A stretch of 64,000 nucleotides of DNA. Origin: Octopus bimaculoides. Its lineage: Eukaryota. The translations under genes and the position numbers were made by a program. Shown one piece after another: positions 2,201-57,880 of this stretch (the first letter of the stretch is position 1; every line of letters starts with the position of its first letter). Location of the stretch: the NCBI RefSeq assembly GCF_001194135.2, contig NC_068984.1:91580748-91644747 (forward strand), written 5' to 3'. The notes beneath the pieces are model-generated. The model was not told the origin of the DNA, made no database searches, and worked only from the letters and a program-made list of their open reading frames with translations.

Positions 2201-2557
2201 ATTTAAATTAGATTATCCTGCAAAATGAAATTTAATTACTTTAAATCTGTCCAAATACATATAAATATTACTCGATGCCATTAGATATTCTAAAATACTG
2301 TTAAAGAGCATACAAATTGAAAATATAGAAGTCCAAACATTATGTGTGTACCCACATACATGCATTCATCTACATTTTGATGTATGTGGAGTGTGTAAAG
2401 TGTTATACTTAAAAAATATGTGATGACACATTTACATACAAATGTAAGCATACATATATAATATATTCTCAAATGTACATGTATGTTTACACTTGCATTT
2501 GAATGCTTGAGAATATATATATATATATATTTGCATGTATGTATATATATATATATT

Positions 2558-8212: not shown

Positions 8213-9691
8213 CAGTCTAACCTGTCAATAACAAACTTGTTGTTTCACGAAATGTTTGAACATTCATTACTGAGCAAGTTTTTAATATAAATATTTGTCA
8301 ATAACAAACTCTTTTTTGAGAAAAAAGTTATGAATTTAAGTTGCTTTCATGTATTTATTTACCTTAATTATGATTTATGATGCTCAATTCTTCTTTGCAG
8401 ATGTCAAATTCATAAGTCTTTTTTAGTCTCTTTTTACTGTTAATTGAGAGAATATTTTTTTCTGCTGAAAATATGTGCTTTAAGACTTTTTCCAATAAAA
8501 ATGGGTTTTAACTTCTCACCAGTTGCACTACATGTCAATAATATTGTAATTCTCTCTTTTGATTCCTTTAATTTTGTATTATCATCGTTAAGAAAAACAT
8601 AACTCTTAGTCGGCAATTTTTTGGAGAACAATGCACTTTCATCAGTGTTAAAGATATTTTCTGCATTATATTCAAGAAGCTTGTCTTTAAATTTATCATG
8701 AAATTCATTTATTTCATTTTCAGACAGGTCAACTTTAGTACCAGTTAGAGTTTTAAATTTAACCTTATTTCTTTTTAAAAAAGAATTTAACCACCCATTA
8801 CTGGCCTTAAACTCCTTTTCATCATTCTCTTTCACAATATCCAGAGCATTTTGTTTGATCATATTTACTGGGATTTTTAGTGATATAATATTTTTAAGGT
8901 GAAGTATATTTGCCACTTAAATGTGGCTGACCCCTAAGGGTGGATGTTACTGTTGCTTTTAGCCCCAGGAGAACATCTCCTCCAGTTCTTCAATAAGTGA
9001 TTCATCTTCTTTGGTCTTAATTGGCTGTAGTTTTTTTGTATTTAAATTCTTTCCTGATTGAAGCATGTCATTATAAGTACAAATTATTTTTTTCTCATTT
9101 TTTTAAAGTTTGGATATTGTTGATTTTTGTATGTTTCTTTTTTATATTACAAATGCAGCTTTGTTTTGTTTCAAATCATCAAGAATTTCATTTTTAGTTT
9201 TGATACAATATGCATTCCATTTATGTTCTGCCATGTGGTTGTATACTATTTTGCTTGTAATTTAAAAATGAAAAATATAATTTGTTAAGAATTTCCAAGT
9301 AAACTATAAAGATTTTGAAATACTAATAATGCTGTAAAAATAAAAACAAAAATATAAAGAAGTCTTGGAAGCCTTAACAATGCACATGGGTAAATCTCCA
9401 AGTAACAAAAAATCTGGTGGTACTGAGAGAAGGAGACGTAAGAGGAAGTGTAGAAATGCAGAAAGAGATGTAGAAGGTGTAAAAGAATGCAGGAAAAGTG
9501 TAAAATCTCGTCTCACATCTCTCAGATAGATTTTTAATCAAAAGTGCTTCCTTGATCCTTAAAGTCTATTAGTGTTAGTTTCCATTGTAGACGAAAAAAA
9601 AAAAATCTATTTAATGAAAATCTGCTAATAACGAACTTTTCTTTGGAGTTCGTTATATAGAGGGAAAATTCATTATTGACAGGTTAGACTA
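8213..9691 (-). mobile_element. pogo/Tigger-like DNA transposon, internally deleted, both TIRs present
   Basis: TIRs cagtctaacctgtcaataa (8213-8231) and ttattgacaggttagacta (9673-9691), TA on both flanks. ATG at 9234 with an HTH-psq-like N-terminus, then CENP-B HTH (FKASNGWLNSFLKRN) and DDE start (IFNTDESAL...KERITILL...GEKLKPIFIGKS). In-frame stops present. Confidence 0.9.
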
Positions 9692-17002: not shown

Positions 17003-18228
17003 CAAGGGTTGGACAAAATAATGGAAACACTTAGCATCATAATTTTGAAATACCTATAAGACCATCAAAAGCTTGTTTATTTTTATGTTTCAAATTGCTG
17101 TTTCCTTTCAGATATCAGAAAAAGGTAATTAAAATTCATTAAAATAACAGATCTATTGGACTTTCAAACAGGTCAAATTGTTGGTGCTCGTATGGCAGGC
17201 ATGAGCATAACGTAAACAGCGGAAATGTTCAGTGTATCAAGAAGTACTGTCTCGAAAGTAATGACAGCCATTGAGAAAGAGGGAAAAACTTCTTCGTCGA
17301 AACAAAACTCCGAAGAAAACCAAAACTTTCAGATTGGGACTGTCAGACTCTTACGCGAAAATTACTGCAGAACTTAATGACCACCTTGAGAACCCAGTTT
17401 CCACAAAAACTATTTGCCAGGAGCTGCACAAAGCTGGATTTCACGAGAGGACTGCAATCAGAAAGCCACTACTTTCAAAAACAAATGTTAAAAAGCATTT
17501 AGANNNNNNNNNNNNNNNNNNNNNNNNNNNNNNNNNNNNNNNNNNNNNNNNNNNNNNNNNNNNNNNNNNNNNNNNNNNNNNNNNNNNNNNNNNNNNNNNN
17601 NNNNNNNNNNNNNNNNNNNNNNNNNNNNNNNNNNNNNNNNNNNNNNNNNNNNNNNNNNNNNNNNNNNNNNNNNNNNNNNNNNNNNNNNNNNNNNNNNNNN
17701 NNNNNNNNNNNNNNNNNNNNNNNNNNNNNNNNNNNNNNNNNNNNNNNNNNNNNNGGCCCAAAGGTTTCCCTTCATGGCAGAATTAATAGTCAAGACTATT
17801 TAAGCATTTTATCTGATCAAATTCATCCTATGGTTGCGGAACTGTTTCTGGAGGGAAACGCAATCTTTCAGGATGATAATGCACCAATTCACACAGCTAA
17901 AGTTGTTACTGAATGGCACGAGGAACATTCTAGTGAAGTTGAACATCTTATCTGGCCATCACAGTCCCCAGATCTCAATATTATTGAACATTTATGGTGC
18001 ATTTTAGAAAAACAAGTAAGGAGTCAATATCCTCCACCATCATCACTACAAGAACTGGAGACTGTTTTAGCTGAAGAATGGACACATATTCCTTTGGAAA
18101 TAATTCAAACTTTGTATGAGTCCATAACTTGTAGAATTCAAGCTGTAATTACTGCCAAAGATGGTCCTCATATTAAAATAAATTTGTTTGAAATTTTAAG
18201 GTGTTTCCATTATTTTGTCCAACCCCTG
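17003..18228 (+). mobile_element. Tc1-like (DD34E) transposon with both TIRs, spanning an N gap
   Basis: 28-bp TIRs caagggttggacaaaataatggaaacac / gtgtttccattattttgtccaacccctg (27/28 match), TA on both flanks. HTH region FQTGQIVGARMAG..SRSTVSKV; catalytic FQDDNAPIH...SPDLNIIEHLW. Confidence 0.95.
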
Positions 18229-18639
18229 TATATATAGTAAGCAGGAAAACAGACAGGCTGCTACATTTTCATGAAATGATTCTGTTTAGTATGTAGCAGA
18301 AGTGTAGGTAGAAATTCCATATGATGTATATAGTGCAAACCATGGATTTATTAGAAGTTCAATGGAATCATAGGAAGGTTAACAGAGAAAGTAGACTTTG
18401 TTCATGGCAAATGCACAGCAATATTAAACACAAAGAACATGCAGGAAATAGATTTTCCTCAAATGACCAGCAGTGTCCCTAGAAGTAGCAGATACTTTCT
18501 GTTATCCAAGCAAGCTAATTAGCTGTGGAGGAATAAGTTCTGAAAGTATAGTAGGTAAAATAAAATATGGCCTGATAATGTTTAGACAAATATTACATTT
18601 GTTGGTAACAAGGAGCCCCTCTCTCAGAGTGTAGAGTAG

Positions 18640-20649: not shown

Positions 20650-21768
20650 GGCCATTTTTTCCAGAATGTTGAATATAACATGGATAAAAAGTAAATTTGC
20701 ACAATTTTCTTATTCCAGTTCAAGCTAGGCCGAAAAGCTGCTGAAACAGCTCGCGATATCAACGATGTGTTTGGCCCAGGAACCACTAATGAATGTATAG
20801 CACAATGGTGGTTCAAGAAATTTCGTAGCAGTGACAAGAGTCTTGAAGGTGATAAGCGAAGTGGTTGGCCATCAGATGTTGACAACGATCAACTAAGAGC
20901 CTTAGTCGAAGCCAATCCACGCACAACTTTTTGAGACCTTGCTTCTGAATTAGACGTAATGTATATGACAATTTCCAACCATTTGAAAGAGATTGGAAAA
21001 ACAAAAATACTTGAGAAATCGGTGCCACACAAATTGAACGTCAACCCCAAAAAAAACCCGCCGTTTGCCGTTTTGAAGTGCTGTCTTCCTTCCTTTTACG
21101 CAACAGGAACAACCCGTTTCTCAACTGAATTGTGACTTGCAATGAAAAGTGGATTCTTTACAACAACCAGCGATGCTCAGCTCAGTGGTTGAATGCCAAT
21201 GAATCTCCACGGCACTTCCTGAAGCCAAAGTTGCACCAAAAGAAGGTCATGGTGACTGTTTGGTGGTCTGCGGCTTTTTTGGTTCCAGGCGAAATCATTA
21301 CGGCGGAGAAGTACTGTCAGCAAATGGATGAAATGCATAAGAAACTCCGACAACAACAGTCAGCATTGGTCAATAGAAAAGGACCAATTCTTCTCCACAA
21401 CAACGCTTGGCCGCATGTCGCACAACTGACCCTGCAGAAGTTGAATGAATTGGGCTATGAAACTCTGCCTCATCCGCCATACTCACCAGACCTCTCGCCT
21501 ACCGACTACCACTTTTTCAAGTATCTCGACAATTTCCTGCGTGAGAAATACTTAAAACACCAAGACGATGTCAAACACGCCTTCAACGACTTCATTACCA
21601 CTAGAACCCAGGATTTTTATGCTACTGGCATGAATAAACTTGTTTCATGTTGGCAAAAGTGTGTTGATTCTGATGGTGTTTATTTCGATTAATAAAGCTT
21701 TTTTGAGCTGAGATATGTGCATCCGAATTTAAAGGTTAAAAACCGCAAGAACTTTCTTGACAACCTAA
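20650..21768 (+). mobile_element. Mariner (Hsmar1/SETMAR-like) transposon, inactivated
   Basis: MDKK*ICTIFLFQFKLGRKAAETARDIN..., VTCNEKWILYNN, LLHNNAWPH, PYSPDLSPTDYHFF (two catalytic D read as N). Right TIR aaccgcaagaactttcttgacaacctaa followed by TA; the left end is lost at the N gap. Confidence 0.95.
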
Positions 21769-23208: not shown

Positions 23209-23303
23209 CTAAAGAATAAAAGAGATCACAAAAGCATAAAAAAATAAATAGTGGCTCTACACATTATGTTTACATATATGGCACCAAAGATATAATTGTT
23301 CTA

Positions 23304-24206
23304 CGAGGTCTGATCAATAAGTATCCGGATTGTTGCCATAGTAACGAAGCTAAAGCATGCAGAGTAAAGCCGCTTGGCAAAGATTGACCTTGAACTCTGC
23401 TGTGCATGTGCACTAAGTTTTAACTTTCTAGCTCACTTCTGCTGTTTACAACAGTGCTTGGAAGGAAGGTGTGTAGCATGTGATCGTCGCATTGACCATG
23501 AAAGAGAAAGTTGTCATGGCAATACCTGCTCAGAGGCCTATGCAAGGTTGTAGAAAGTATATGGAGAGGAGTATATGAGCTGTACACAAGTATATGAGTG
23601 GTTCAGACGTTTTCAAGATGGCCAAAAAAATGTTGATATTGATGATCGTTCTGGGAGACCTGCAACCAGTAGAACCGAGAAAAACATTGCAGATGTGTGT
23701 GCAGGTGTGATGGGAAATCAGGAAATCACCAAATCAACGTCTGTGAATTATCAGAGGATGTACAGATTAGTTACATTTCAGTTCAGTCCATTATCACTGA
23801 AGATTTGGGTATGAGACGCGTGTCTGCCAAGTTTGTACCAAAACTGCTTTTAGCTGACCAAAAAGACACTCAAGTTTCAGTTGCACAAGATACCCTTGAT
23901 TGTGCCGAGAATGATGAAAACGTTTTGAAAACTTTGCATAGGCCTCTGAGCAGGTATTGCCAAGCTTTTGGTAAAAGTTGATGCAGATTTTCTACTCAAC
24001 TTTCTCTGTCATGGTCAATGCGATGATCACACGTTACACACCTTCCTTCCAAGCACTGCTGTAAACAGCAGAAGTGAGCCAGAACATTAAAACTTAGTGC
24101 ACATGCACAGCAGAGTTCAGGGTCAATCTGTGCCAAGCGGCTTCACTCTGCATGCTTTAGCTTTGTTACTATGGCAACAGTCCAAATACTTACTGATCAG
24201 ACTACG
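23304..24206 (+). mobile_element. Non-autonomous mariner derivative with ~210-bp inverted arms
   Basis: Arms 23304-23513 and 23997-24206, TA on both flanks. The interior holds the transposase N-terminus (QVYEWFRRFQDG..DDRSGRPATS, LGMRRVSAKFVPKLL). Confidence 0.92.
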
Positions 24207-26635
24207 TATATTTTCTAACATGTTGATAAAATCACTACTAATAGAAAAGCTGGATGATATACTTCTTGTAAACAATTTAACAGCATAGTTCACACTTGAA
24301 TATTTGATACTTCTGTTAGATTTTAGAACTAATATATGTCTCTTGGTTTGTGTTAATGATTTTCTGTATTTTAACTATAAAAAAAAATGCTTTAACAAAA
24401 CTTTCAAGCCAAAAGAAACGTATAAAGAATGATATTTTGCAAACAAAAAACTTGCAGTTGGGAAAATACTTTCAGTAGCAAACAAAGAAATAGAATTCAA
24501 ATGCAACAGAAAAACTTTGAATCTGTGAAAACCAAGACTACAACCTATCAAATGTCTAGCAAAATTCTAGAATGTGCACAGGTACATACACAGGAAAAAA
24601 TTACATGAGGTGAGGAGATGCACTCAGCTAAGATATAACCCATTTTCAATATTATTTTTTAATTTTTTATAATGCAAAATGTAGTTTCAGTTCATAAGTT
24701 ATAGAACAATAATTGTCAGTTATTCATTGGTATAAATATTCTCTCATTCATCTGTCTTCCCATTTCTTTAAAGTCCATCAGAATAAACTATACTGTGACA
24801 TGGAGATAACTTCATTCTCAGACAGCTCTTTGTATCCTACCTTTGCCTACCTACATAACTGAAGCAATCTTAGACTGGTAATATTAACTCTTTGATAGCT
24901 AACCACTTCTCTACATCATACAGAATGCATGGCATCTTAATTGTAGTGAAGGCATCTATCTAACAAATTTCAGTTCTCCAAAGAAACTCATTGAGTAGTA
25001 TCTCTGAATAAAGGGTGATCAGTGGAGAGCAGACAACCACTCTAATGCCAGGAGTATGATAAAATGTATCCAGTCAGTACTATAAAGTGGTTGGTGATAT
25101 GAAGGATACCAAACTATAAATACATGACATCCAAAGCAACAAAGTTGGCTAAATTTTTCTGTGTGCCAGATGATGAGATAGGCTGATGAATGGCAAGACA
25201 AGAGAATGGAAATGATGATGATGAAGATGACTGATGATTACAATGGTTATAATGATGTTGCAGACTACACAGTAGGTTGCCTAACAATGTGGCAGGTTGT
25301 ACCAGGTTACATATTACCAGTGGCACTAAGAGTGACCTGACAATAGTTTGCCTGCAATCACTGAGCTGTGTATGCAACTACTTATTTTCTTGCTCAGGAG
25401 CCCAGGTGAAGAGTAAAGTTAAACACAAGGGCCCAAGTCTGAGAGGGTTAATGCAAATATATTTGTATAATTTTTTGCATACTGAAGTTAATACTACATG
25501 GAAAAGGTTACAAAACAACTTTAATCATAAGGAAGTCATATAGCTAAATAAATCTACCTTCACCTCTCACAACTGCTTTACTTTATGCAATATATATCTC
25601 TCACTGAATAATTGATCATTTGGATTTTTCTGGATTTTCAGTTACACAGACTTCTGGAATGCACACACACACAAATACATCATCATTATCACCCTTTTAA
25701 TGTGTACTTATCCATACTCACATAGGTTGGATGGAAATTGTAGAGATGGATTTTCTACAGCCAGATGCCCTTTCTATTGCCAACCCTCACCTGTTTCTAA
25801 GTAACATCACTAGCATGATGGTGATACTTGTTTTACAATGTGATGACAAGGCAAGTAGACATAACACACACACACACATATACAATAGGCTTCTTTCATA
25901 CTCTTATCTACCAAATCCACCCAGAAAGCTTTAGTCAATCTGGGGCTACAGCAGAAGACACTTGCCCAAGGTTCCACACAGTGGGACTGAACCCAGAACC
26001 ATGTAGTTGGGAAGCAAACTTCTTACCACACAACCATACCATATAGAAATGTGTGTGAATGTGTGTATATATAATGGGCAAGAATACATAAAAAAAAACA
26101 ACAGACACAGAGAATTAGTGTTCAAACCAGACAAGATATGTAAAATCTAATGCTGATTGAAGGGACAGAATCCAGGGAAAGAGTTGGCTACAGGCAATGT
26201 ACCAGTTGAGCTTATGAAAGTACAATAAAATAAAATATAGGCAGGCAGTTGTTAATGGCTTCAAAGCATAAAATAGTTATACAGGAGTATGGAAAATATA
26301 TATATATAATTAAGCAGAAATGCAAAAAAATCAAGAAAGCAAGAGTTCATAGAATTCTTCATAGATAGGTATATATCTTCAAAGTTCATACTCAAACCTC
26401 ACAAATAGGACAGTGGATAATATAGTAACCCTTTACAATTGTGTTCAGTAAGTGCTGTATTGTGCATCATGTGTATATGTACATGATGTAGATTGGTGTT
26501 AGCAAATGTATATGAAATAACACAATAAATGAATTTTGTCTATCCCATGCAAAAGTAGACATTAAAAAAAAATGAAGAGAAAAATAAAATTTCATGGAAA
26601 TTTTTGCAATAAATATTTAAATATAATTAACTCAC

Positions 26636-26769: not shown

Positions 26770-29141
26770 CTGCAACATAAAAGAAACAACTTAATTAAAC
26801 TTCAATAAGAGCATTTTTTCATATGATCTTTACTGGAGCCAGATCCATAAATCAGGCATTGAAGCTTGAATTGTTACACATTAAACTGAGATTTGAAGCA
26901 ACTTATTTGGTAGAAAAACAGAAAAAAACATAAGTGATATATGAACAGGGAGACAAAGTAGAGCATCACATTTCTAAAATAAATGCTTATGTGCTGGTGT
27001 CACATAAATTGCACAAGTGCCAATGCTACGTAGATGCAACCATGCCAATGGCATGTGAAAAACACCTGGCACACTGAGTAAAGTGACTGGCATCAGGAAG
27101 GGCATCCAGCCGTAAGAACCATGCCAAAACAGATAACTGGAGCCTGACAGCATGGAAAATGGACATTAAATGACAATGATGATGATGATGAGTGTACAGG
27201 AAATAATTATAGTGTACTGGACAATATAACTATTTTCTGTACACTAAGTATTTTAGGTGCAATAAGAAATATAATAATATGAGCAACCATCAAGCAAAGA
27301 CTTTCATGACATAAGTACAGGAAATGGAGTAGTGATCAATCTTTTCATGTCTTCTAGGTAGTGAGAGCTAGTTTAGGTTGGTTTGAATTGTAGCAGATTT
27401 GTGATAAGAAAAATGTATATGAATGTAGTTTTGGTAACGAAAAATGTTTAGTGAGAGTTGAACACAGGGATTGGAACAAAAAGTATGCAATATGTTATCA
27501 TTAGTTGTACATAGGCCTCAAAAGCAGGAAATCTACAATGACATATTAATATAATGTGCAGAAGTGCTATACAAAGCTTGTAGAAGAAGTTAGTCATAAT
27601 TGAGTAGAGATCACTGAATGTAGGATGATACCTTTGCCTGTAAGGAAAAGATACACTCTGACTGAAAACGATCTCAGAGCCAGTGGTTAGATACTTGTAA
27701 TAAATACTAATCAAAGAGTTTGAAGCAGTTAGGATTACAGACAAGATAATGCAGAATCAAGATACATAGCTGTATGGTAAGAAGCATGCTTCCAAGCCAC
27801 ATGATTCTGGGTTCAGTCCTACTGCATGGAACCTTGGGTAAGTGTCTTTTACTTGTGCGTGGATTTCATAGACATAAACTGAAAGAAGGCCATTGTATGT
27901 ATCATCATCATCATCATAGTTTAACGTCCGCTTTCCATGCTAGCATGGGTTGGACGATTTGACTGAGGACTGGTGAAACCGGATGGCAACACCAGGCTCC
28001 AATCTAATTTGGCAGAGTTTCTACAGCTGGATGCCCTTCCTAACGCCAACCACTCAGAGAGTGCAGTGGGTGCTTTTACGTGTCACCCGCACGAAAANNN
28101 NNNNNNNNNNNNNNNNNNNNNNNNNNNNNNNNNNNNNNNNNNNNNNNNNNNNNNNNNNNNNNNNNNNNNNNNNNNNNNNNNNNNNNNNNNNNNNNNNNNN
28201 NNNNNNNNNNNNNNNNNNNNNNNNNNNNNNNNNNNNNNNNNNNNNNNNNNNNNNNNNNNNNNNNNNNNNNNNNNNNNNNNNNNNNNNNNNNNNNNNNNNN
28301 NNNNNNNNNNNNNNNNNNNNNNNNNNNNNNNNNNNNNNNNNNNNNNNNNNNNNNNNNNNNNNNNNNNNNNNNNNNNNNNNNNNNNNNNNNNNNNNNNNNN
28401 NNNNNNNNNNNNNNNNNNNNNNNNNNNNNNNNNNNNNNNNNNNNNNNNNNNNNNNNNNNNNNNNNNNNNNNNNNNNNNNNNNNNNNNNNNNNNNNNNNNN
28501 NNNNNNNNNNNNNNNNNNNNNNNNNNNNNNNNNNNNNNNNNNNNNNNNNNNNNNNNNNNNNNNNNNNNNNNNNNNNNNNNNNNNNNNNNNNNNNNNNNNN
28601 NNNNNNNNNNNNNNNNNNNNNNNNNNNNNNNNNNNNNNNNNNNNNNNNNNNNNNNNNNNNNNNNNNNNNNNNNNNNNNNNNNNNNNNNNNNNNNNNNNNN
28701 NNNNNNNNNNNNNNNNNNNNNNNNNNNNNNNNNNNNNNNNNNNNNNNNNNNNNNNNNNNNNNNNNNNNNNNNNNNNNNNNNNNNNNNNNNNNNNNNNNNN
28801 NNNNNNNNNNNNNNNNNNNNNNNNNNNNNNNNNNNNNNNNNNNNNNNNNNNNNNNNNNNNNNNNNNNNNNNNNNNNNNNNNNNNNNNNNNNNNNNNNNNN
28901 NNNNNNNNNNNNNNNNNNNNNNNNNNNNNNNNNNNNNNNNNNNNNNNNNNNNNNNNNNNNNNNNNNNNNNNNNNNNNNNNNNNNNNNNNNNNNNNNNNNN
29001 NNNNNNNNNNNNNNNNNNNNNNNNNNNNNNNNNNNNNNNNNNNNNNNNNNNNNNNNNNNNNNNNNNNNNNNNNNNNNNNNNNNNNNNNNNNNNGCTGTAG
29101 TTTAATGACTGAATTAAAATAAAACAAAAGAAAGGTAGAGG

Positions 29142-30978
29142 TGTAGCGAAGCTTCTCTCTCAGTTATATACATGTGAATGCGGACGTAGCGGGTAACATC
29201 TAGCTTTCGGCTGCATCTTTGGCCTGTTGTGTCCACCACTCCGATTGGTTGGTATTGGCGCACTTTTGTCTAGTTCTATTTCGCATCAGGGTGCATACCA
29301 ACCAATTGCAGCCTTCTGATAAGGTCACATGGAACAGGTTTTCTGAACCCCTGCTTGAGCAGATTTTTCCTCTTAAATAGCTTGCCTGTCTGCACTAAAG
29401 TTTGTCGCGACTTTAGACCTTCTGAGGTCTAGTCGCTGACCACAGAGCACCAGCCAGTTCCAGCGACAACATACCACCGTTCAACACCTTGCTGCAAACT
29501 CCATCTTCGTTGCCACTTCCAGCTTCTTAGCGTCTACACCGTCGTCTCAACATACACACCACCAACAGCGCCTGCACAGTTTCTCTCAACACTGTTTGTG
29601 TGAATTGCTTCACCATGAATAACAGCCAGAATTCAACCTGTGAGACTCCTGTACCAAGTAACCGGCCACAGCATTGAAACCTCAACTTCTTATGTGACAT
29701 GTCTTACTACGGCTCTGCCTACTCGACGCCATAACCTCTTGGTACAGCATTTCAACCTACTGTGTACCTTAGCTACGAACTGGTAATTCACATCCTTGTG
29801 TCTGAACTTTTAACGTCCTTATTTATTGACTTTTCTATGCTCTGTATCTCTTGCATCCACATACACATATTTGTATACACTCTTTTGTATACATGACGGC
29901 CTGTCTTATATTGTGTTTTATTATGTCGCATTCACTCTCACACAGACATACTAGTTGACAACCAATAAACCTTACTTCTATACATGTTACCAGATGAGTC
30001 TCTCTTTCTTTCCTTGTTAGCACTTACCTCATTCCATCTTTTGTACAAACTAGTTTGTAGACGACTGTGCGACCAAGGAGATGGTGACGAAGGAACGGCT
30101 CCTTTTAGCGCGTCGCACGGTCGGCAGAAATATAAGAAAAAACAAAAGATGGAATGAGGTAAGTGCCAACAAGGAAGGAGAGAGAGACTCAACCGGTAAC
30201 ATGTATAGAAGTAAGGTTTATTGGTTGTCAACTAGCATGTCTGTGTGAGAGTGAATGAGACATAATAAAACACAATATAAGACAGGCCGTTGTGTATACA
30301 AAAGAGTGTCTATACAAATATGTATATGTGAATGCAAGAGATATAGAGCATAGAAAGTCTATAATAAGGACGTTAAAAGTCCAGACACAAGGATGTGAAT
30401 TACCAGTTTGTAACTAAGGTACACAGTAGGTTGAAGTGCTGTACAAGAAGTCGTGTCCGAATAGCAAAGCCTGGAGAAATGGTACATGTTACCCGAGAAG
30501 TTGAGGCTACGATGCTGCAACCGATTACTTGGTACAGAGGGTCTTGCTGTTATTCGTGGTGAAGCAATTCACACAAACAGTGTTGAGAGAAACAGTGCGG
30601 GAGCTGTTGGTGGTGTGTACATTGAGTAGATGCTGGCGACGAAGAAGCTGATGGTGGCATCGAAGATGGAGTTTGCAGCAAGGTGTTGAATCTCCATGAA
30701 GCTGTGTCGAGTTGTCGCTGGAACTGATGAAGCAAGCTATTTAAGAGGAAAAATCGGCTCAAGCAGGGGTTCAGAAAACCGTTCCATGTGACCTTAGCAG
30801 AAGGCTATGATTGGTTGGTATGCACCCTGGTGTGAAATAGAACTAGAGACTAAAGTGCACCAATACCAACCAATCAGAGTGGTGGGCACAACAGGGTCCA
30901 AAGATGCAGCCAAAAGCTAGATGTTATCTGCTACGTCTGCATTCACATATATATAACCAAGAGAGAAGCTTCGCTACA
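29142..30978. mobile_element. Inverted (tail-to-tail) dimer of LTR-like units with a single 4-bp TSD (GAGG)
   Basis: TGTAGCGAAGCTTCTCTCT at 29142 and its inverse ending at 30978. GAGG at 29138-29141 and 30979-30982. Arms are complementary along ~850 bp. Junction TACA-AACTAGTT-TGTA at 30044-30059. Confidence 0.88.
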
Positions 30979-31049
30979 GAGGGAAGATTATATTAAGACA
31001 GAAAAAATAAAACATTACTTAAATGATGATGATATAAAAATATCTTTAC

Positions 31050-31241
31050 CTTTTTTATATCATTATTAAGCATTAAAAATTCATCTTCAACTAATTTATA
31101 AGAATTTTCAAACTGTTTCATATGTACATCCTGATTACTGTGATGAGTTGATGCATGCTGCTGGTAAGAATATAGTTTTGATGGTATTTCTGAGATCAGG
31201 GGCGAGACAGTGTTAGCTGGACGATTTCTGATTTGAAAAAT
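31050..31241 (-). CDS. PDSS1: PDSS1 exon (IFQIRNRP...NSYKLVEDEFLMLNNDIKK)
   Basis: Acceptor TATCTCTTTGCAG and donor AAG|GTAAAG; 192 nt, phase 0/0. The C-terminal part aligns to human DPFKLGWRDLKGLYEDIRK, which precedes the same intron position. Confidence 0.8.
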
Positions 31242-32559
31242 CTGCAAAGAGATAACTTTTCAATGAAATATTTACCAGCCAGAAATCCTTTGCAAGAACA
31301 AAGACAAAAAAAAAAACATTTGAAAGAAAATGAAAGACTGGTATAAACCCAATTTTTGGGGTAGTGTTTCTATGAATGTTTTTTTCTCATCTATTTGATT
31401 TAATTTACCATTTTTGTAGGTTATAAGGAAAAGCAAGATATAATATCAAGGACCTTGACTAATGATAAGCATTGATCTTGCAGATTTCTGAAAATTCACA
31501 GATTAATACTAGTCTATCCCATAAGTTCATATTGAAAATCATAGAGGTAAAAATTTGGTGTATGCAATTGGGTAGTATTTAAATTAAAATAAGCCATCCA
31601 TGTATCAGTCATAATGCATATATACACCAATGACAGGCAAATTACTGAGGCTTCTGTTTCTTATAGAGGGAGATGAAAAATCAAGTGAGACTGCTAGCAG
31701 CATTTTGGCCTTTCTGGGTCTTGTCAATGACATGTACTTACAGCCAGCCATATGCCTGGATGAGATTTGTCACCTCCAACATAGGATACAAATCTTGTCT
31801 AGGTGTGTGGCTGGCAGCAAGCACACATGATTAACAAGGCTCCAAGAGGCCAAAATACACCTATCATTCATGCTAGCTGCTGCTGGGACGATTTTTCGAC
31901 GCCTTCCAATCCATATAGTGTGTTTTTAATTACAGCACATCTACAAAAACAGACAAAAACTGCAGTAATTTGCCCGTCACTGGTGTATTTACATTAAGCA
32001 TGATACTGGGATGGGCTATTTCGTTGAGGTAAGTTTAAGTTTTTCTAGGCACCTAGTACATTGCTCCTATTACAGTTAATTAGTAGATCCAGTGATTTTT
32101 GGAATTTTAATTTGGAAGTAACTCACAATCAAAGCAATAGAATTGTTATGTTTCTTGGACTTCTAAAGTGTAGACCCAGATTCGGTGTGGTTCTTTATGG
32201 GTTTAAATGCAAGTGATGGCAATAGATCATGCTTTACTTTTCTTTTGCAAAAACTAAATGATTTTATCAGCTGCAGCAAGTTCCGATTCGGTAAATGGGT
32301 GAATACCAATGTTGTATGTTTCAATCCTTAATGTAGGTATTCTCAGTTGTTCTAAAGTTCTGCTCTTTTTAATACTGTTTCTCTGTTAGCCTCTTCCATT
32401 AGATTGACTTTTAAGATATTCACACGCAACTCACACTAACATAAGTCTGATATAGATCTAGTTCAAACTTATTTTTGAGAGAGAGAAAGTTATTCTTTTT
32501 TAAAGTGTTTACAGCATAATTCATATCCATAAAATTAATCTTTTTCGAAACTAGAGATA

Positions 32560-39220: not shown

Positions 39221-40423
39221 TTCAGGGGTTCTCAATTTGAGTATTCATGGGAGAACACATCCACAAAACGATATATACATGTGATATACACATACAACAG
39301 TAATGAAATATGCACATTGTTCTATGTGACCCCACCCAACACAAATGCATATTTATCCACACACACATATATGCATAAATCAACCGATTCCGGTAACCAC
39401 AAAACCCGAGAATTGCATGACTTAAGAGAGCCTTGCCACTTTGGCTTGAATTTTGCAGCGGTAAAAATTTAAAATAAACGTTAAAGAAACATACATATGC
39501 ATGAATATATATGTGTGTGTATATATACATACATACATTTATATGTAGATAAAATCACTATATTTTTGATTAGTTCCTTGAAAAGATGCTGAGAATCAGC
39601 AATTTGTCTGAGAGGATTGTTTCACTAGAACTTGTTGCATTTTAGAAGATGGTTGAAGTTGAGCTTCACATGAGGACTTGCCCAATACATATACCAGCAT
39701 AAAAATGCGAATGTAAAATGTATTTAAACTGGTAACCATGAATATTAGCAACATACATTTTCTAAATACTTTAAGGAATCTTTTCATTCTGTACATATCT
39801 TTTACTTGCATTACATAGTCAAACCAAAGCAGCTGTTTCTCTTGCATACCCAGCTAATTTAGATGTTCAGTGTGTAAATTATCTCCCCTCTTCTTTGAGA
39901 ACTGCAAATTACGGCCTAATTTCTTTTTTCCTTTTCCCAAGAAAAATTTCAATTAAGAACTTTATGCATATATCATCCCTTAACTTGTTTAAATCTTTAA
40001 TTTCTGTTCAGTCTTTCCCATATGTTTCACAATACTTAGCTTAATCTTTTCTAATTGTAACAAATCTGCTTTCACTGTTGTGCTGCTCCTTACATTAACG
40101 ATCAATTCATAAAATATACCTTTTTTTTTCAGAGAAAACTCTTTGCTGCCAGAAATTCTACCATATTGTCTGCAAAACAGTGTCTCAAAGTCACCTTATA
40201 CTGGTGAGTCACATATTATGAACACATATTTAAAAGGAGGAAGTATTGTCTGGTGATACAAAGCAACAGTGATTAGGTGTTTATGGTTGAATCTGCAAGA
40301 GCATATTAAGAATGAATTTGATTACATTGAAAGTAAAGTTCAACCACTGGAAAGAAGCGTGTAGCTGTTTTGAAATAAAAATGATTTTGAACTTGATTCT
40401 TCTCTAGTGCTAAAAGTGATCTA

Positions 40424-41915
40424 CACCCAGAACCATGCTAATAGCTTAGGAGTGAAATTTAGGATTTCTCAGTTTTCTGTGAATTGATTTTGATAAAACT
40501 TTTCCCAGCTGGTTTGCACACTATGGCAACACCATTGTTATATTTTCATTATTCTGTGTAATGTCCTTTCTTTTATATTTCAGATTCTTCAGTTTTTGGG
40601 TGAACCACACTAATAGTGTCTCTCTTCTCTGAGAACGATGTGATGTGGAAAAGGCCTTAATGATGAAAAAAAAGTCTGTCATTATCAAAGAAAGTGCTAA
40701 AAGCACCTCTCTTCATGTTACTGCAGAGAAGTTAGGTTGTCATGTGGACACAAATCATTCCTGAAGGACCCTTTGCCAAGGAAGAAATGATCTGATTGTG
40801 GGACCTCCAAGACTGTGACAGCTAGGGATTTAAGGAATATTTGCTACAAGTTGCGTGGGAAACCTGGACAAACAAGCAAATACATTTTCACCACCCCTGG
40901 ACTTCCCCATGTACTGAAAACCATCAGAAATCATACCTTTGGGACCATGGCTTCTGTGTGAGAACCCCTGAAACTGCCCCACTTAATGCACCATCCCAAG
41001 AGTTTGAGGCTTTAATAGGGCCAAAAGTACATGATGTTAGACATGAGTTGTGTTCTGTTCACTGATGAAACCAGGGTGACCCTTGATGGTTGGGTCTATT
41101 TTGGAGATGAGCATCAGCATCAGGGTGGAGGGTTCATGTTGTGGGCTGGTATCATTGGGGATAGACTTGTTGGCCCAGTCAGGGTGCCTGAAGGGGTTAA
41201 AATGACCACAGCCGCCGACTGAAATCTCCTGAAGGTCTTGGATCCCTGGCTAGATGACATACAACTTGTATTCATGCATAACGCTCCCTCCCATTCTGCT
41301 AGGACCACCCAAACATTACTAGGGTCTTACAGCATACAAGCTGAAAGGCTGATGGTGTGGCCGCCAGCATCTCCAGATCTCAACCCTATCAAAATTCTTT
41401 GGTCCATCATTAAACAAGACGTTTACGCTGATGGACACCAATTTACGTTGAAAGATGTCTTATGGGTGACCATCAAAACTGCAGCAGAGGCAGTCCAGCC
41501 TGCTACTATTAAGCAATTGACAGATTCCATAACTAATAGGGTTTTTGAAGTTATCCGTCGAAATGGCGCTTGTTTGGCAAAATAATTCATTATGTCAATA
41601 AATGTTATAATATTATTATGGTTTTCTGTTAAATAAATATTCAATGTATGCTTAATATGTAACATAACCCTTCATTTTCTGAAAAAAAAAAAATGTCTAG
41701 TTGAGCTATTTTCATTCAAAAGCTATTAGCATGGTTCACCCCAAAACTGAAAAATCTGAAATAAAAAAGAAAGGACGTTACACAGAATAATGAAAACATA
41801 ACAATGGTGTTGCCATATTGTGCAAACCAGCTGGGAAAATTTTTGTCAAAATCGATTCACAGAAAACTGAGAAATCCTAAATTTCACTCCTAAGCTATTA
41901 GCATGGTTCTGGGTG
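40424..41915 (+). mobile_element. Tc1-like transposon with long IR/DR-type termini
   Basis: ~195-bp inverted repeats (40424-40616; 41721-41915), each with an outer and inner copy of ...accatgctaatagct; TA on both flanks. Fragments FTDETRVTLDG, MHNAPSH, WPPASPDLNPIKILWSIIK. Confidence 0.92.
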
Positions 41916-44019
41916 TATACTTATGTCCTATTTTCTTAATCTTAAAATGAGCTAAATCTGTCTCTGGATTCAATAAAATCAAATTACAAATAGATAAATA
42001 TATATTTACTAGCTAGGAAAATCTGAAGCTAGTTGGAGTTAAGAAAATGAATTACAATTCTTTGCTGATTTGTTTTTGTTCAGCAACAAGTTTGGAAGAA
42101 AACTAACAAAACAAAAATACAAGGGTCTAAATTTTTTTTATATAAATATTTAAAGTTTATACATGGCTGACACTATATGGTATCCCTAAAGCTCCACTGT
42201 TGGTATCTTCATCACTTAGTCTTGATTCAAGAATTCAATAGCTATCAAGAATACATCTCAGAATCAGGATTTTCTACATCTGTGACACGTTTCACTGAAA
42301 AATAGAAAATAAAATAATTCAACAAGAATTCAAATAAAAAAAACCCTTTAAAATTTATTAAATTGTAATATATTTCACAGCATGTATTTGAAGCTTAATG
42401 AAATAGGTAATATCTATTTCCCGACCACCACAACTTGTACCTTCTTCCCTTGACCCTCACAAATCTTGCACCCTGGCCCCTCCACCAAACCTCTTGCACA
42501 CAGTACACATCCACCCTCCTCTTCCTCAATTCCCCTTCCACACAGACTGCTCATTTCCAACATCCCAACCTCACCCCAATCTTCTCCTCAGGCCGTCGGC
42601 TATCATAAGGCAAGTCATGTTTGCACAACCCAGGATAAGGGTTTGCACCTTCCTTTTTCAGGTAGACAGGTGCAGCCCACCCCAACCCTTTGGATTGGCT
42701 GGTGCCCATTCTCCTTTGCTATTATCATGATGCTTTTCTGTAGCTAGATTTTCTATGGGGAGCATGCCCTTGCTTACCCCCAACCTCAGTTTCTAGACAT
42801 GAGTGGTCCTGAGACTAAGGCCTCTACCATGATTTTTAAGAAATGTGGTGGAAAACTAGCTCAGGAAGGCAGGGACGCTACTCTCTGAGACCCCTTATCA
42901 GAGACCCCCTCACACTGTGTTGTAATATTTATTTGATATGGAATTATATGATATATGTAAGAAATTACATATTCAAAAATACTTATATATGTTAATATAT
43001 GCATTCACATCATCCACTGAAATGCTGGATTTAGTATCAGTTTTGATGATAAATGCTCCAGTTGTTCAATCAACAGAATCACATCCTCACTATATTATAT
43101 AGTAGAATGGCTGAGTATCCCAGACACTAGTTGGTATTTTGAATTACTGGAAACTATGGTATTTGACACCCAAGCTACTGCATGGTAAGATGAAGCACAT
43201 ATACATTCATATAAATACAAAATACAAGCATCTCATACATAGCATGAATCAGACCCAGTGCATACTTTAAATAGAAAGACTAACGTGAGGTTATGCAACC
43301 TAGACTTGCTTTCCACCAGCTCTGTCAAATGGTTTGAATTTAACATAACATGTCAATAATGTATTTCCAATCTTCAGGGCAATTAAATACTCTATAAGCA
43401 ATTTATTATTTTTTACAGAGTAATTATACATGAAATTACTGTCTAAGCCTGTTCCAAATAGTACTTAAGGCAACTTCTTCTCATTGTTTAACCATGTGGT
43501 TTCAGGTTCAATCTCACTGTGTGGAACCTTGAACAAGTGTCTTCTACTAAAGTCATGAGCTAAGCAAAGCCTTGTGAGTGGTAGACTGAAACTGAAAGAA
43601 GGCCATCATACTTGTGTGCATGTGAGTGATCACTTCTATTGGAGTGCAGTGTTATCAGGTTTTCAAGTCAGCAAATTGTTTCACTTCTTTCTTTGGAAGC
43701 CAAATAGAAATCCCTTACTAGAAAATCAGATAAGGGTCAGTATCAGGAAGGGCATCTGGTCATAAAAAAATGCCTCATCCAACCCATGCAAAAAGGGATA
43801 CATTTGAGCATTTTAAATATGAGAAAATAATTTAAACTGAACATAATAATTTAAATTAAAGAGGCGCAGGACTGGCTGTGTGGTAAGTAGCTTGCTAACC
43901 AACCACATAGTTCTGGGTTCAGTCCCACTGCGTAAAACCTTGGGCAAGTGTCTTCTGCCTTGGGCCAACCAAAGACTTCTGAGTGAATTTGGTAGATGGA
44001 AACTGAAAGAAGCCAATCG

Positions 44020-47133: not shown

Positions 47134-48385
47134 TGTAGTGAAACTACCTATCGCCATTAGATACAAAACTACTATCGCCATTAGATACAATCTTCTCATT
47201 TAAATATAAATAAATGCGAGCGTAGTAGAGAACCCATTCCTTGTCATCACGTGACTGATCATTATTCGAATCGGCAACTTCTTCGAACTGTTCCCGCCAG
47301 ACCGCAAACTGACCAATCACGGCCCCTAATAAGGTCACGTGATAGAGTATATTTCTACCATCTGGTGAGCCAATAGTTTGTTATAAATAGCNNNNNNNNN
47401 NNNNNNNNNNNNNNNNNNNNNNNNNNNNNNNNNNNNNNNNNNNNNNNNNNNNNNNNNNNNNNNNNNNNNNNNNNNNNNNNNNNNNNNNNNNNNNNNNNNN
47501 NNNNNNNNNNNNNNNNNNNNNNNNNNNNNNNNNNNNNNNNNNNNNNNNNNNNNNNNNNNNNNNNNNNNNNNNNNNNNNNNNNNNNNNNNNNNNNNNNNNN
47601 NNNNNNNNNNNNNNNNNNNNNNNNNNNNNNNNNNNNNNNNNNNNNNNNNNNNNNNNNNNNNNNNNNNNNNNNNNNNNNNNNNNNNNNNNNNNNNNNNNNN
47701 NNNNNNNNNNNNNNNNNNNNNNNNNNNNNNNNNNNNNNNNNNNNNNNNNNNNNNNNNNNNNNNNNNNNNNNNNNNNNNNNNNNNNNNNNNNNNNNNNNNN
47801 NNNNNNNNNNNNNNNNNNNNNNNNNNNNNNNNNNNNNNNNNNNNNNNNNNNNNNNNNNNNNNNNNNNNNNNNNNNNNNNNNNNNNNNNNNNNNNNNNNNN
47901 NNNNNNNNNNNNNNNNNNNNNNNNNNNNNNNNNNNNNNNNNNNNNNNNNNNNNNNNNNNNNNNNNNNNNNNNNNNNNNNNNNNNNNNNNNNNNNNNNNNN
48001 NNNNNNNNNNNNNNNNNGTATAATTGCTCACGTGTCATTTACTGACTCTTTCTATCTGCTGTAATAACTCACACATGTATCACTCACATACACACTTTTC
48101 TTTGTATGACGGCCTGTCTTTGATTATGTTCTTATATGTCGCATTCACACTCACACACAGACATACATCTTTAACGCTACAATAAATATCTCTGTTATTC
48201 ATCTAATACGGTTGTGGTCTTTCATTACTGGTCATCTATGTTATCGTCGCATAACATATCATCTATATCATCCATCGATATATTATTGTGTGTTCGACCG
48301 TGTGACTCGTTTCAATAAAAGGAGTCCTCTGTTTTTCCATTCGTCACCATATCTCCTTTTTGAGTTCGCACGGTCGTCCCTTACA
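47134..48385 (+). mobile_element. Solo LTR (Gypsy-like), TG...CA termini, TATA TSD, spanning an N gap
   Basis: Starts TGTAGTGAAAC and ends GTCGTCCCTTACA, with TATA on both flanks. CCAAT boxes and TATAAATAG before the gap, AATAAA after it. Shares blocks with the 29-31 kb arms. Confidence 0.8.
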
Positions 48386-48409
48386 TATATATATAAATAT
48401 GCAAATATC

Positions 48410-49285
48410 ATCATCATATAATGCCTGTTGTCTATACTGGCATAGGTTGGATGGTTTGACCAGAGCTGGCAAGCTGCACCAGACTCCATCTGATTTGGCA
48501 TGGTTTTTACAACTGGATGCCCTTCCTAATATCAACCACTTTACAGAGTGCACTGCCACGAGTGCTTTACATCATTGGGACTGGTCTTAGCACTTCTGCT
48601 GTGAAGTATGGGTCTTCTTGAGTACAGTAAAGTGCCAGGCATCTCAGTCCTTTGTTATCTTGCCTGAAATGATCGGCGTCTTCAGTATTTCATCCCATAT
48701 CTTCCTGGATTTCCCACTTTCAGATGTTCCATCCACTTTGAGAGGTTGGTACTTCTTTATGGAGCTGTTGGCATCCATCTGCATCGCATGACCAAACCAG
48801 TAGTCTTCTCTCTTGCACACAGCAACCAATTCTGCTTATGCCTAACTTCCCTCTCAGAACACTGACACTCTGTCGAACATGTACATTTACATTACACATC
48901 CAGCGGAACATACTAGCCTCATTCCTTTCTAATTTGTGTATGTCCTTGGCATTCAGGGTCCACATCACACTACCAAGTAGAATTGCTGTCTGGATACATG
49001 CATCATACAATCTTCCTTTCATTCAGAGAGAGAAACCTTTTGTGGACAACAGAGGTAACAACTCTGAATTTCCTCCATCCTACCCTACTACTAATTTGGT
49101 TCCCTAGGTAGCAGAAATTATCTACTACCTCTAATGAGCTACCAGGGCATTTGAAAGTATCAATTTCCCAGGTCTCTAAAGTTTTTACAGATCCAGTGCA
49201 TTATCCACATATGAAAACTATCTTCTCTGATAACCATCCTATTAATCCAGTGCAACTCTTGTGTGTCCATAGCTTACACTGGGTA
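48410..49285 (-). mobile_element. Older RTE LINE 3' fragment
   Basis: MKGRLYDACIQTAILLGSVMW...ERNEASMFRWMCNV on the minus strand, plus the RTE tail at about 48410-48560. Confidence 0.85.
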
Positions 49286-55449: not shown

Positions 55450-57880
55450 TATATGCTGCCTCCTAGAAGTAAGGTGAAGAGGAGGTTCCGCTAGGTTCCT
55501 CACAGGCAAAGAACACGGGTACAAGATTTTCTGGGCAGGGAACACAGATGGGGTCGGGGGCGTGGGTATACTTCTTGCGGAGAAATGAGTGGATAAGGTA
55601 ATCGAGGTAGCCAGAGTATGCGATAGAATACTTAAGATTAGATTAGTCCTTCACCATGGTTTAGCAACCATTATCTTGGCCTATGCCCCTCAGCCCAGGC
55701 TACCCGATGTACAGAAAGACCGATTTTATGACACCCTCTTGCAGACTACCTCATCGATGAATGACAGGGACCTTCTCTTTGTGGCTGGTGACTTCAATGG
55801 AAAGGTTGGACAACATGCAGGGGGCTTCCATGGCATACATGGAGGCTATGGCTTTGATTTCCGCAATGAGGAGGGAACCAGGCTGCTGGAGTTCTGTGAT
55901 GCAAATGACCTTACGGTTTGCAATACTAACTTCAGGAAACCTGCCAGTCACCTAGTCACCTACCGTTCTGGCAGGCACACCAGCCAAATTGACTACATCC
56001 TCGCTAGGAAAAGGGAAAGATGGCTGCTTATAAATGCCAAAACCTTCCCAGGCGAAGAATGTACCCCACAACATAGACAAGTAGTTAGTGACTTCAGAAT
56101 CAAGGCTAAGTAGTTGCCCACAAGACGACCAGCATAGAGGAGAAGGGTCTGGAAGCTCAAAGATCCTGCGAATGGACAGAAATTTAGAGACTTATTACTC
56201 GAAGCCTTTGACGAAATAGAAGGGGATATAGCTTCACACGATGTAGAAGACAACTGGAAGTTGACAACATGCAGAGGGCCACTGACCAGATCTGTGGATG
56301 GTGCAAAGTCCCCTCTTGACCCAAAATAACGTGGTGGTGGAACAATGTTGTTGACAGGGCTATTAGACAAAAGAAACAGGCTTGGAAGGACTGGAAGAAT
56401 GGTGGTAGCAGGGAATTGTACCAGACTGCCAGAAGGCGACAGGTTTATTTAGCCAGAGGGAAGCAGATAAGAAAAAAATTGCCAATGTTCTGCGCCATGT
56501 GGACCAAAGAGTTGAGGTATTTCGTATTGCAAGACAGTGTGTGAGAGAGAATCGTGATGTCGTAGGAGAAAAATGTGTTTGCATGGATGATGGTACACTT
56601 GCACTAAACGAGGCTGCAAAGAGAGATGTTTGGAGACGCCACTATGAAAGGTTGCTCAATAAAGAGAATGAATGGGAGAAAGAGAGTCTGCCAAATGTCA
56701 ACCCAACAGAGGGATCAGCTACCCGAGTTGACAGTACTATGGTAAATAAAGCAACTAAGAGTATGAAGACAGGGAAAGCCTCAGGCCCATCAGGAATCAC
56801 TGCAGAGATGCTCAAAATATCTGGCAGTGTCAGCTATAGCCTAATGACCCATATAGTTAATCAGGTGATACACAAAGGAGTCATACCCAATGACTGGTGT
56901 AGCAGCACCATAGTCAACTGCTACAAAGGTAAAGGTGATGCTTTAGATACGAATAATTACAGAGGTATCAAGTTTTTGGATCAGGTAATGAAAGTCACGG
57001 AGAGGGTCATAGCCCAACTAATTAGGGAGAGAGTCAGTTTAGATAAGATGCAGTTTGGGTTCGTGCCAGGGAAAAGCACCACTGATGCTATATTTCTGGT
57101 AAGACAGCTGCAGGAGAAATACCTCGCCAAAGATAAACCTCTGTTCCTGGCTTTCGTTGACATGGAGAAAACCTCTGACAGGGTCACCCGATCCCTTATC
57201 TTGTGATCAATGAGGAAACTAGGGATAGAAGGATGGTTAGTGAGAGCTGTGTGAGCCATGTACAGAGACGCTGCCAGTAAGGTGAGGGTTGGCAACGAGT
57301 ACAGTGAAGAATTTCGGGTAGAGATAGGGGTCCACTAAGGTTCAGTCCTCAGCCCCCTCCTATTTATCATAGTCCTCCAGGCAATACCATAGGAATTTAA
57401 GACAGGATGCCCTTGGGAGCTCCTCTATGCTGATGACCTTGCGCTAATTGCTGAGTCACTATCAGAACTAGAGGAGAAGTTTCAGGTGTGGAAGCAAGGA
57501 CTAGAATCGAAGGGCCTTAGAGTCAACCTAGCTAAAACCAAAATCCTAATAAGTAGGAAGGTAGACAAAATACAAACCCCTGTTGAGGCAATCGAAATCG
57601 AACCAAATTCGACAACTGGCACCCATGCCAACCTCTCCTTCATTGGACACTAAACTGGGCTTGCGAAGACCTGTTGGGGCAAGTGAAAGCGAAATTGTGA
57701 TGGCACCTGTATCAGTGGAGTGCTAAGAGCACCGTCCGAGTGTGGTCGTTGCCAGAGCAGCTGTCTGGTTTCTGTGCCAGTAGCACATAAATAGCATGAT
57801 TGTTACCAGCGTCACTTTCCTGGCACTTGTGCCGGTGGCACGTGAAAAGATATCCGAGTGACGTCATTGCCAGTGCAGCA
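55450..57880 (+). mobile_element. RTE-clade LINE with APE endonuclease and RT, internally deleted toward the 3' end
   Basis: APE motifs (AYAPQ, VAGDFNGKVG, SQIDYILA) at 55589-56113. RT (NYRGIKFL, QFGFVPG, LLYADDL) at 56499-57560, with stops. Jumps to the 3' UTR at about 57583. Confidence 0.95.

Follow-up and report, generated by a model that had tools for sequence, protein, structure and literature searches.

A palindrome of two tail-to-tail LTRs in the Octopus bimaculoides genome and its probable origin by integration of a U5-U5 joined cDNA dimer

A stretch of 64,000 nucleotides from Octopus bimaculoides (NCBI RefSeq assembly GCF_001194135.2, contig NC_068984.1, positions 91,580,748 to 91,644,747 of the forward strand; hereafter the window, numbered from its first base) contains a 1.84-kb palindrome at 29142-30978, in which two long terminal repeats (LTRs) are fused tail to tail. 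We consider that this structure probably arose when an abnormal complementary DNA (cDNA) dimer, joined through its U5 (unique 5') regions and carrying a U3 (unique 3') end at both termini, was inserted in one integrase-mediated step. So regarded, the dimer is a dead-end by-product of LTR-retrotransposon replication that still integrated. Aberrant integration products of LTR elements are a kind already known, and a literature search for an integrated inverted LTR dimer turned up no direct precedent for this form.

Repeat finding, self-BLAST and alignment agree that 29142-30047 (+ strand) and 30056-30978 (- strand) are reverse-complement copies of each other, as a preliminary description of the sequence had claimed. 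The left arm is 906 bp long, runs from TGTAGCG to TACA and is identified as U3-R-U5 (R, the repeated region of an LTR) by the arm alignment and by homology to a direct LTR elsewhere in the window. The right arm is 923 bp long and, by the alignment and by collinearity with the same direct LTR, is a complete LTR with its full U5 end. In a global alignment the identity between the arms is 87.1% over 823 aligned columns, slightly lower than the 90% or so first estimated by eye, while the CpG transitions and large indels mentioned with that estimate are present. The differences comprise 64 transitions (17 of them in CpG context) and 42 transversions. Directly before its terminal (T)ACA, the left arm has lost 83 bp (previously put at about 80 bp), and this U5 segment exists only in the right arm, where it adjoins the centre of the palindrome (30060-30142, - strand). 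The right arm has lost 64 bp just past its TATA-like box, corresponding to a segment found only in the left arm (29388-29451, + strand; alignment columns 271-334). Further indels between the arms measure 14, 11 and 1-2 bp. Columns 521-620 of the alignment were considered as a small internal inversion, and this was rejected, as the arms are collinear there by eye, with indels.

Direct reading confirmed that TGTAGCG opens both arms and that TACA closes both, followed in each case by AACT. Because of this, the centre TACAAACTAGTTTGTA at 30044-30059 (TACA-AACT/AGTT-TGTA) forms a perfect palindrome of 16 bp, which occurs only once in the window, where 0.03 chance matches are expected at two or fewer mismatches. 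The 8-bp spacer between the arms (30048-30055) is made up of four extra bases beyond each LTR end and, since the same AACT follows both arms, the axis of symmetry lies four bases past each U5 CA. Joining of the two halves at cDNA ends whose U5 was complete and unprocessed would put the axis just there. The tips of U3 and U5 are also near-identical (TGTAGCGA vs TGTAGACGA), the TG...CA ends forming a short inverted repeat, as in LTRs of integrase-type (Gypsy/BEL-like) retrotransposons.

For the identity of the arms, the sequence compared is an ordinary direct solo LTR of a related family at 47134-48385 (+ strand; TGTAGTG...CTTACA), which lies outside the palindrome in a (TA)n tract and includes a 626-N gap (47392-48017). 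The right arm, read on the - strand, is collinear with it at 58-68% identity in two stretches. The first extends from the TGTAG start, past the CCAAT motifs, as far as the TATA box (score 61, against 40 for the best of 100 shuffles), and the second from the middle of R through AATAAA to the final TACA (score 152, against 46 for the best shuffle). The preliminary description had spoken of shared sequence blocks; the similarity holds, and it extends beyond blocks to a collinear start, promoter, poly(A) region and terminus.

As far as sequence motifs go, the order CCAAT, TTAAATAGC, AATAAA is common to both arms and the direct LTR. In the left arm, CCAAT/ATTGG motifs (29244-29306, + strand) found by motif search stand upstream of the TATA-like box TTAAATAGC at 29373-29381 (+), which points right and aligns with TATAAATAGC at 47382-47391 of the direct LTR. 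The right arm has its TTAAATAGC box at 30736-30744 (-), pointing left. The two predicted promoters therefore converge, as had been proposed. A putative poly(A) signal AATAAA is located at 29964-29969 (+) in the left arm, at 30217-30222 (-; TTTATT on the + strand) in the right arm and at 48181-48186 in the direct LTR. Moreover, the 83-bp segment of the right arm contains a 10-bp stem, CTGTGCGAC at 30065-30073 with GTCGCACGG at 30112-30120 (+ strand coordinates). The direct LTR forms the same kind of stem (GACCGTGCGA/TCGCACAGTC type) within 48295-48385 (+), with one change from G-C to G-U, and the left arm is without it, the 83-bp deletion having removed it. Lying close to the U5 end, this conserved structure may represent a U5 stem beside the primer-binding site.

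Judged from the collinearity with the direct solo LTR and from the common U5 stem, each arm is a complete U3-R-U5 LTR of a family related to that at 47134-48385. The 83-bp gap of the left arm is then a secondary deletion, because the corresponding segment of the right arm and its stem match the other LTR. The collinearity and the central palindrome together bear out the proposal that whole LTRs were joined tail to tail through AACT/AGTT. By eye, we also observed a tandem duplication of about 22 bp (ctatcgccattagataca, twice) near the start of the 47134-48385 LTR.

The outer boundaries of the dimer are sharp. The left flank reads gaaaggtagagg immediately before TGTAGCG, and on the right CGCTACA is followed by gagggaag, so that GAGG is repeated directly on the + strand just outside both outer ends (29138-29141 and 30979-30982, read directly). 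No separate duplication flanks either arm, the left one lying between GAGG and AACT and the right one between AGTT and GAGG. This is as first described, the whole being bounded by GAGG on each side, and in this window a 4-bp flank match at such spacing occurs empirically at 0.54% of positions. The putative target-site duplication is 4 bp, and the length typical for the family is weakly known, from the direct LTR, which sits between tata and tata, flanks compatible with a 4-bp duplication. In the alignment, arm homology ends exactly at the outer TGTAGCG, and the left flank is unrelated to the reverse complement of the right flank. A flank BLAST within the window for a paralogous empty site found none. 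The position of the outer ends at the first U3 base, together with a single 4-bp repeat, would follow from concerted insertion of a linear DNA with two U3 ends.

These boundaries bear on an origin after integration, in which a break arose 4 bp past the U5 of an ordinary 5' LTR or solo LTR, the resected strand snapped back, perhaps at a CTAG/ACTAGT micro-palindrome, and the LTR was copied in reverse. The centre is indeed a short perfect palindrome containing ACTAGT, and fold-back priming at breaks is an established source of inverted duplications (PMC10622511, PMC10766183). However, there is no reason for such copying to halt precisely where the LTR begins, the left flank is not matched in reverse complement by the right flank GAGGGAAGATT, and this origin would not predict the GAGG direct repeat. 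We regard this origin as unlikely.

The same features speak to a history of two independent insertions of one family in opposite orientations, either nested or side by side, after which deletions or recombination by chance produced a symmetric junction. Nested insertion and solo-LTR formation are common, and the arms do differ by 13% and by large indels. Nevertheless, this history needs two deletions with symmetric breakpoints, each 4 bp past a U5 end, as well as loss of both elements' own duplications and a chance match of GAGG, and it appears highly improbable to us. Two other rearrangements were rejected on their geometry. With an inversion between inverted LTRs, the flanks should pair in ways other than those observed, and autointegration or nested insertion beside a 5' LTR predicts a 4-bp spacer, not the 8-bp AACT+AGTT.

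An error of assembly was also weighed, in which two LTR copies would have been chimerically joined in a draft that has gaps. In its favour, no more than 48 bp separate the palindrome from the contig's left end, which follows a gap of 996 N, and there are eight gaps in the window. Against this, the palindrome is not one read used twice, because the arms differ by CpG transitions and indels; apart from the reverse-complementary arms themselves there is no shared junction sequence to cause a mis-join, and a mis-join would not give exact LTR termini plus a flanking direct repeat. An artefact of this kind is barely credible.

Returning to the integration of a U5-U5 dimer, we infer from the shared AACT and the single flanking repeat how the two halves may have been joined and that an integrase took part. 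Two U5 termini of reverse-transcribed DNA would have been joined end to end inside the particle or the pre-integration complex, each retaining an unprocessed AACT that lay between the terminal CA of the LTR and the primer-binding site. By analogy, AACT could consist of AAC as spacer and T as the first base of a TGG primer-binding site, or all four bases could be spacer. The joining itself could have been done by host end-joining, as an intermolecular U5-U5 counterpart of the 2-LTR circle junction, or by a reverse transcriptase that ran off one template end and then copied a second plus-strand strong-stop DNA. The product would be U3-R-U5-AACT/AGTT-U5'-R'-U3', with an integrase-competent U3 end (...CGCTACA-3') at either terminus. 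The integrase would then have paired both identical U3 ends and carried out one concerted insertion with a 4-bp GAGG duplication, at a site that before insertion would have read ...aaaggtaGAGGgaagatt... with a single GAGG. The joined molecules may have been LTR-only, or they may have been two full-length copies whose halves later collapsed to solo LTRs by LTR-LTR recombination. Subsequent decay would account for the divergence of about 13%, for the 83-bp deletion that took the U5 stem from the left arm and for the 64 bp deleted from the right arm. The first of two options in the preliminary description was an aberrant substrate for integrase, with U3 at both ends, and it fits whole LTRs, the AACT/AGTT fusion and the single 4-bp repeat.

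Several steps of this scheme have parallels in studied systems. The double-stranded U5 terminus in HIV-1 (human immunodeficiency virus type 1) retains the bases lying between CA and the primer-binding site, along with one rA:dT pair from the tRNA primer, the pair being due to incomplete tRNA removal, and integrase trims the extra bases at 3' processing (PMC3185654). The attractive idea of an AAC-TGG arrangement of spacer and primer-binding site would agree, by analogy, with such retroviral U5 termini. Foamy-virus integrase is able to perform concerted integration with pairs of U5 donors in vitro (PMC2615609). In grasses, direct three-LTR complexes have been taken as the result of one integration of an aberrant reverse-transcription product on the basis of their flanking duplications (PMC1950507).

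The last case, the template-switching complexes of Sabot & Schulman 2007 (PMC1950507), resembles the dimer in that extra LTRs come from one aberrant reverse transcription and integrate in one piece, with a single pair of target duplications at the flanks as the mark by which this is known. In those complexes the order is direct (LTR-internal-LTR-internal-LTR) and the outer ends are a normal U3 and U5, whereas the dimer is inverted, lacks an internal region and ends in U3 on either side. The junction of a 2-LTR circle is comparable because both would be end ligations of unprocessed cDNA termini, with AACT kept here and the U5 bases kept in HIV-1 (PMC3185654). The circle, however, joins U5 to U3 of one molecule, has direct LTRs and is unable to integrate, while the dimer, joined U5 to U5, is a linear palindrome whose two U3 ends are free. 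Products of autointegration that have an inverted segment (Shoemaker et al. 1980/1981, as cited in PMC5314604) likewise contain inverted LTRs made by integrase before integration, but they are circles that keep internal sequence. Reasoning from the geometry of integration, such products would have a 4-bp spacer by the LTR and would offer no free LTR ends for a chromosomal duplication.

A number of points weigh against the integration of a two-U3 dimer. The case is a single instance. Only 48 bp of left flank are present before the 996-N scaffold gap and, as the duplication is only 4 bp, a chance of 1 in 185 should not be neglected where many repeats have been looked at. The meaning given to AACT is a conjecture, because no parent element with its primer-binding site was found in the window or in the collections searched. 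The arms are 13% different, with one stretch of 86 alignment columns only 63% identical, and may not have been identical at birth. Finally, U3/U3 integration in vivo is extrapolated from in vitro work, since no published integrated inverted LTR dimer was found.

A further possibility, the second in the preliminary description, is that the dimer belongs to a mobile non-autonomous family of foldback or terminal inverted repeat (TIR) elements derived from an LTR and moved as DNA by a Ginger-type transposase with 4-bp duplications. Ginger and Foldback derivatives do resemble the dimer in their TGT...ACA termini, 4-bp repeat and long inverted arms. The dimer shows such termini, a flanking 4-bp repeat and long inverted arms with almost no internal sequence, and its 13% arm divergence could mean a long family history. 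The searches, however, gave no second copy in the 64 kb and no relatives in the protein and DNA collections searched. With blastn, the dimer matched itself in the window and, over 79 bp, the solo LTR only. A full-length element or pol of the LTR family was sought in the window by blastn and Pfam, and none was found. The 10 largest N-free ORFs (open reading frames) of the window gave no Pfam match to gag-pol, integrase or Ginger, so no Ginger or integrase ORF was seen among those scanned. Exact look-ups in a protein collection returned nothing for two ORFs that span the junction, and none of ten window ORFs was in the collection. A 2027-aa chimera of the dimer's stop-free six-frame segments had no match at E<=0.001 among 5.8 billion proteins. 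Scans of metagenome and viral contigs gave nothing beyond the patterns themselves, either for an exact 20-mer kept in both arms or for a motif of 19 specified bases common to both arms and the other LTR. LTR-element integrases, moreover, are not known to excise DNA. The dimer differs from Ginger and Foldback elements in that no transposase, family or second copy was found, and its arms are complete LTRs with promoter and poly(A) signals and a U5 stem, like the nearby direct solo LTR. We find a mobile family of this origin quite unlikely. A related proposal, that the dimer is part of a propagating family of LTR-derived foldbacks whose identical U3 ends serve an integrase or a Ginger-like enzyme as recognition sites, as a living intermediate from LTR to TIR, is very unlikely.

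Elements of the DIRS type have a tyrosine recombinase, no target duplication, repeat ends other than TG/CA and an internal complementary region. They are alike in being retroelements with inverted terminal repeats, as described in PMC3950715 and PMC7192593. The dimer, in contrast, has TG...CA ends and a 4-bp duplication and is without an internal region, and a related direct solo LTR exists. A DIRS element was rejected on the grounds of the 4-bp flanking repeat and of the arms being no more than 8 bp apart; among the ORFs scanned, none nearby was a recombinase ORF. The pseudo-LTRs of Penelope-like elements, which can be inverted, carry a hammerhead ribozyme motif and show variable 5' truncation in the inverted copy, were rejected as well, because no hammerhead was found and both arms are full length with TG/CA ends. 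In Rfam searches, no hammerhead or other family was detected in 29094-31100 at E<=1, one chance match aside, and nothing reached the gathering score in the whole window.

If the dimer was integrated as a unit, its arms would have decayed in place since insertion to a divergence of about 13%, and the insertion is old, because the arms are this divergent. CpG decay is even between the arms (8 vs 4, p=0.39), and this lack of skew is compatible with arms of equal age. After the 83-bp deletion beside the centre of a near-perfect palindrome, the present form is an inverted repeat with a 97-nt spacer. Palindromes are unstable, and a deletion at this place would stabilise the structure.

The locus probably does nothing today. 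For a read-through transcript of 29700-30420, the predicted folding energy is -477 kcal/mol (z = -56); by this model, read-through RNA would form a hairpin of about 300 bp, which could in principle feed small-RNA silencing of the LTR family. Mu killer in maize is an inverted-repeat transposable element (TE) locus of this sort, giving hairpin RNA. Like loci of the Mu killer type, the dimer could, if the folding model holds, yield a transcript with a long hairpin directed against its own family. Unlike them, it has its own predicted poly(A) signal upstream of the centre in each arm, which could stop transcription before the hairpin. We regard the dimer as a single decayed copy and a rare curiosity with no demonstrated function, and not as a demonstrated new mobile family.

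If the proposed origin is true, the dimer is natural evidence that cDNA ends of LTR elements can be joined U5 to U5 before integration, and that integrase can synapse two U3 ends in vivo and finish a normal concerted insertion. Both steps are known or plausible in vitro, and neither was found documented as a genomic insertion. The axis, four bases beyond CA, would in that case mark precisely where the family's unprocessed cDNA ended at U5. Dimers of this sort create long palindromes that could act as fragile sites and could give rise to hairpin RNA directed at the parent family, and they offer one way for a TIR-like structure to arise from an LTR.

Generally, the window is TE-rich, with a GC content of 36.7%, a CpG observed/expected ratio of 0.37 and the eight N gaps already mentioned. 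About 700 bp to the right of the dimer, a near-palindrome at 31689-31869 (87-nt arms at 71% complementarity, 7-nt spacer) may be a miniature inverted-repeat transposable element (MITE). Two short elements at 23302-24208 and 40422-41917 have terminal inverted repeats of 212 bp at 92% and 195 bp at 94%, respectively; with their ends TACGAGGTCTGATCA... and TACACCCAGAACCATGC... and TA at the boundaries, they look like non-autonomous transposons of the Tc1/mariner type. Transposase remnants of Tc1/mariner (DDE_3, Transposase_1) and of the Tc5 type with a helix-turn-helix (HTH) domain were observed at 17271-18237, which is broken by a 251-N gap, and at 21132-21692 and 8440-8916.

Copies of a repeat resembling a short interspersed nuclear element (SINE), with a (CAT)n tail (...catcatcat..tttaacgtccgctttccatgct.gcatgggttggac...), are located at 27082-27189, 27901-28054 and 48400-48560, and two of them flank 27190-27900 in inverted orientation, just left of the 996-N gap. 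Fragments of long interspersed nuclear elements (LINEs) with Exo_endo_phos_2 and RVT_1 domains are present at 55589-57206 and 2503-3090. For the LINE reverse transcriptase ORF, identity to the closest database proteins is only 57%, and among named proteins one of the octopod Argonauta hians gives the best match (53%). A 253-aa ORF at 62261-63022 (- strand) matches RRM_3 weakly; its last residues, ...RCFKCG, may open a zinc knuckle, and the protein may be LINE ORF1-like or gag-like.

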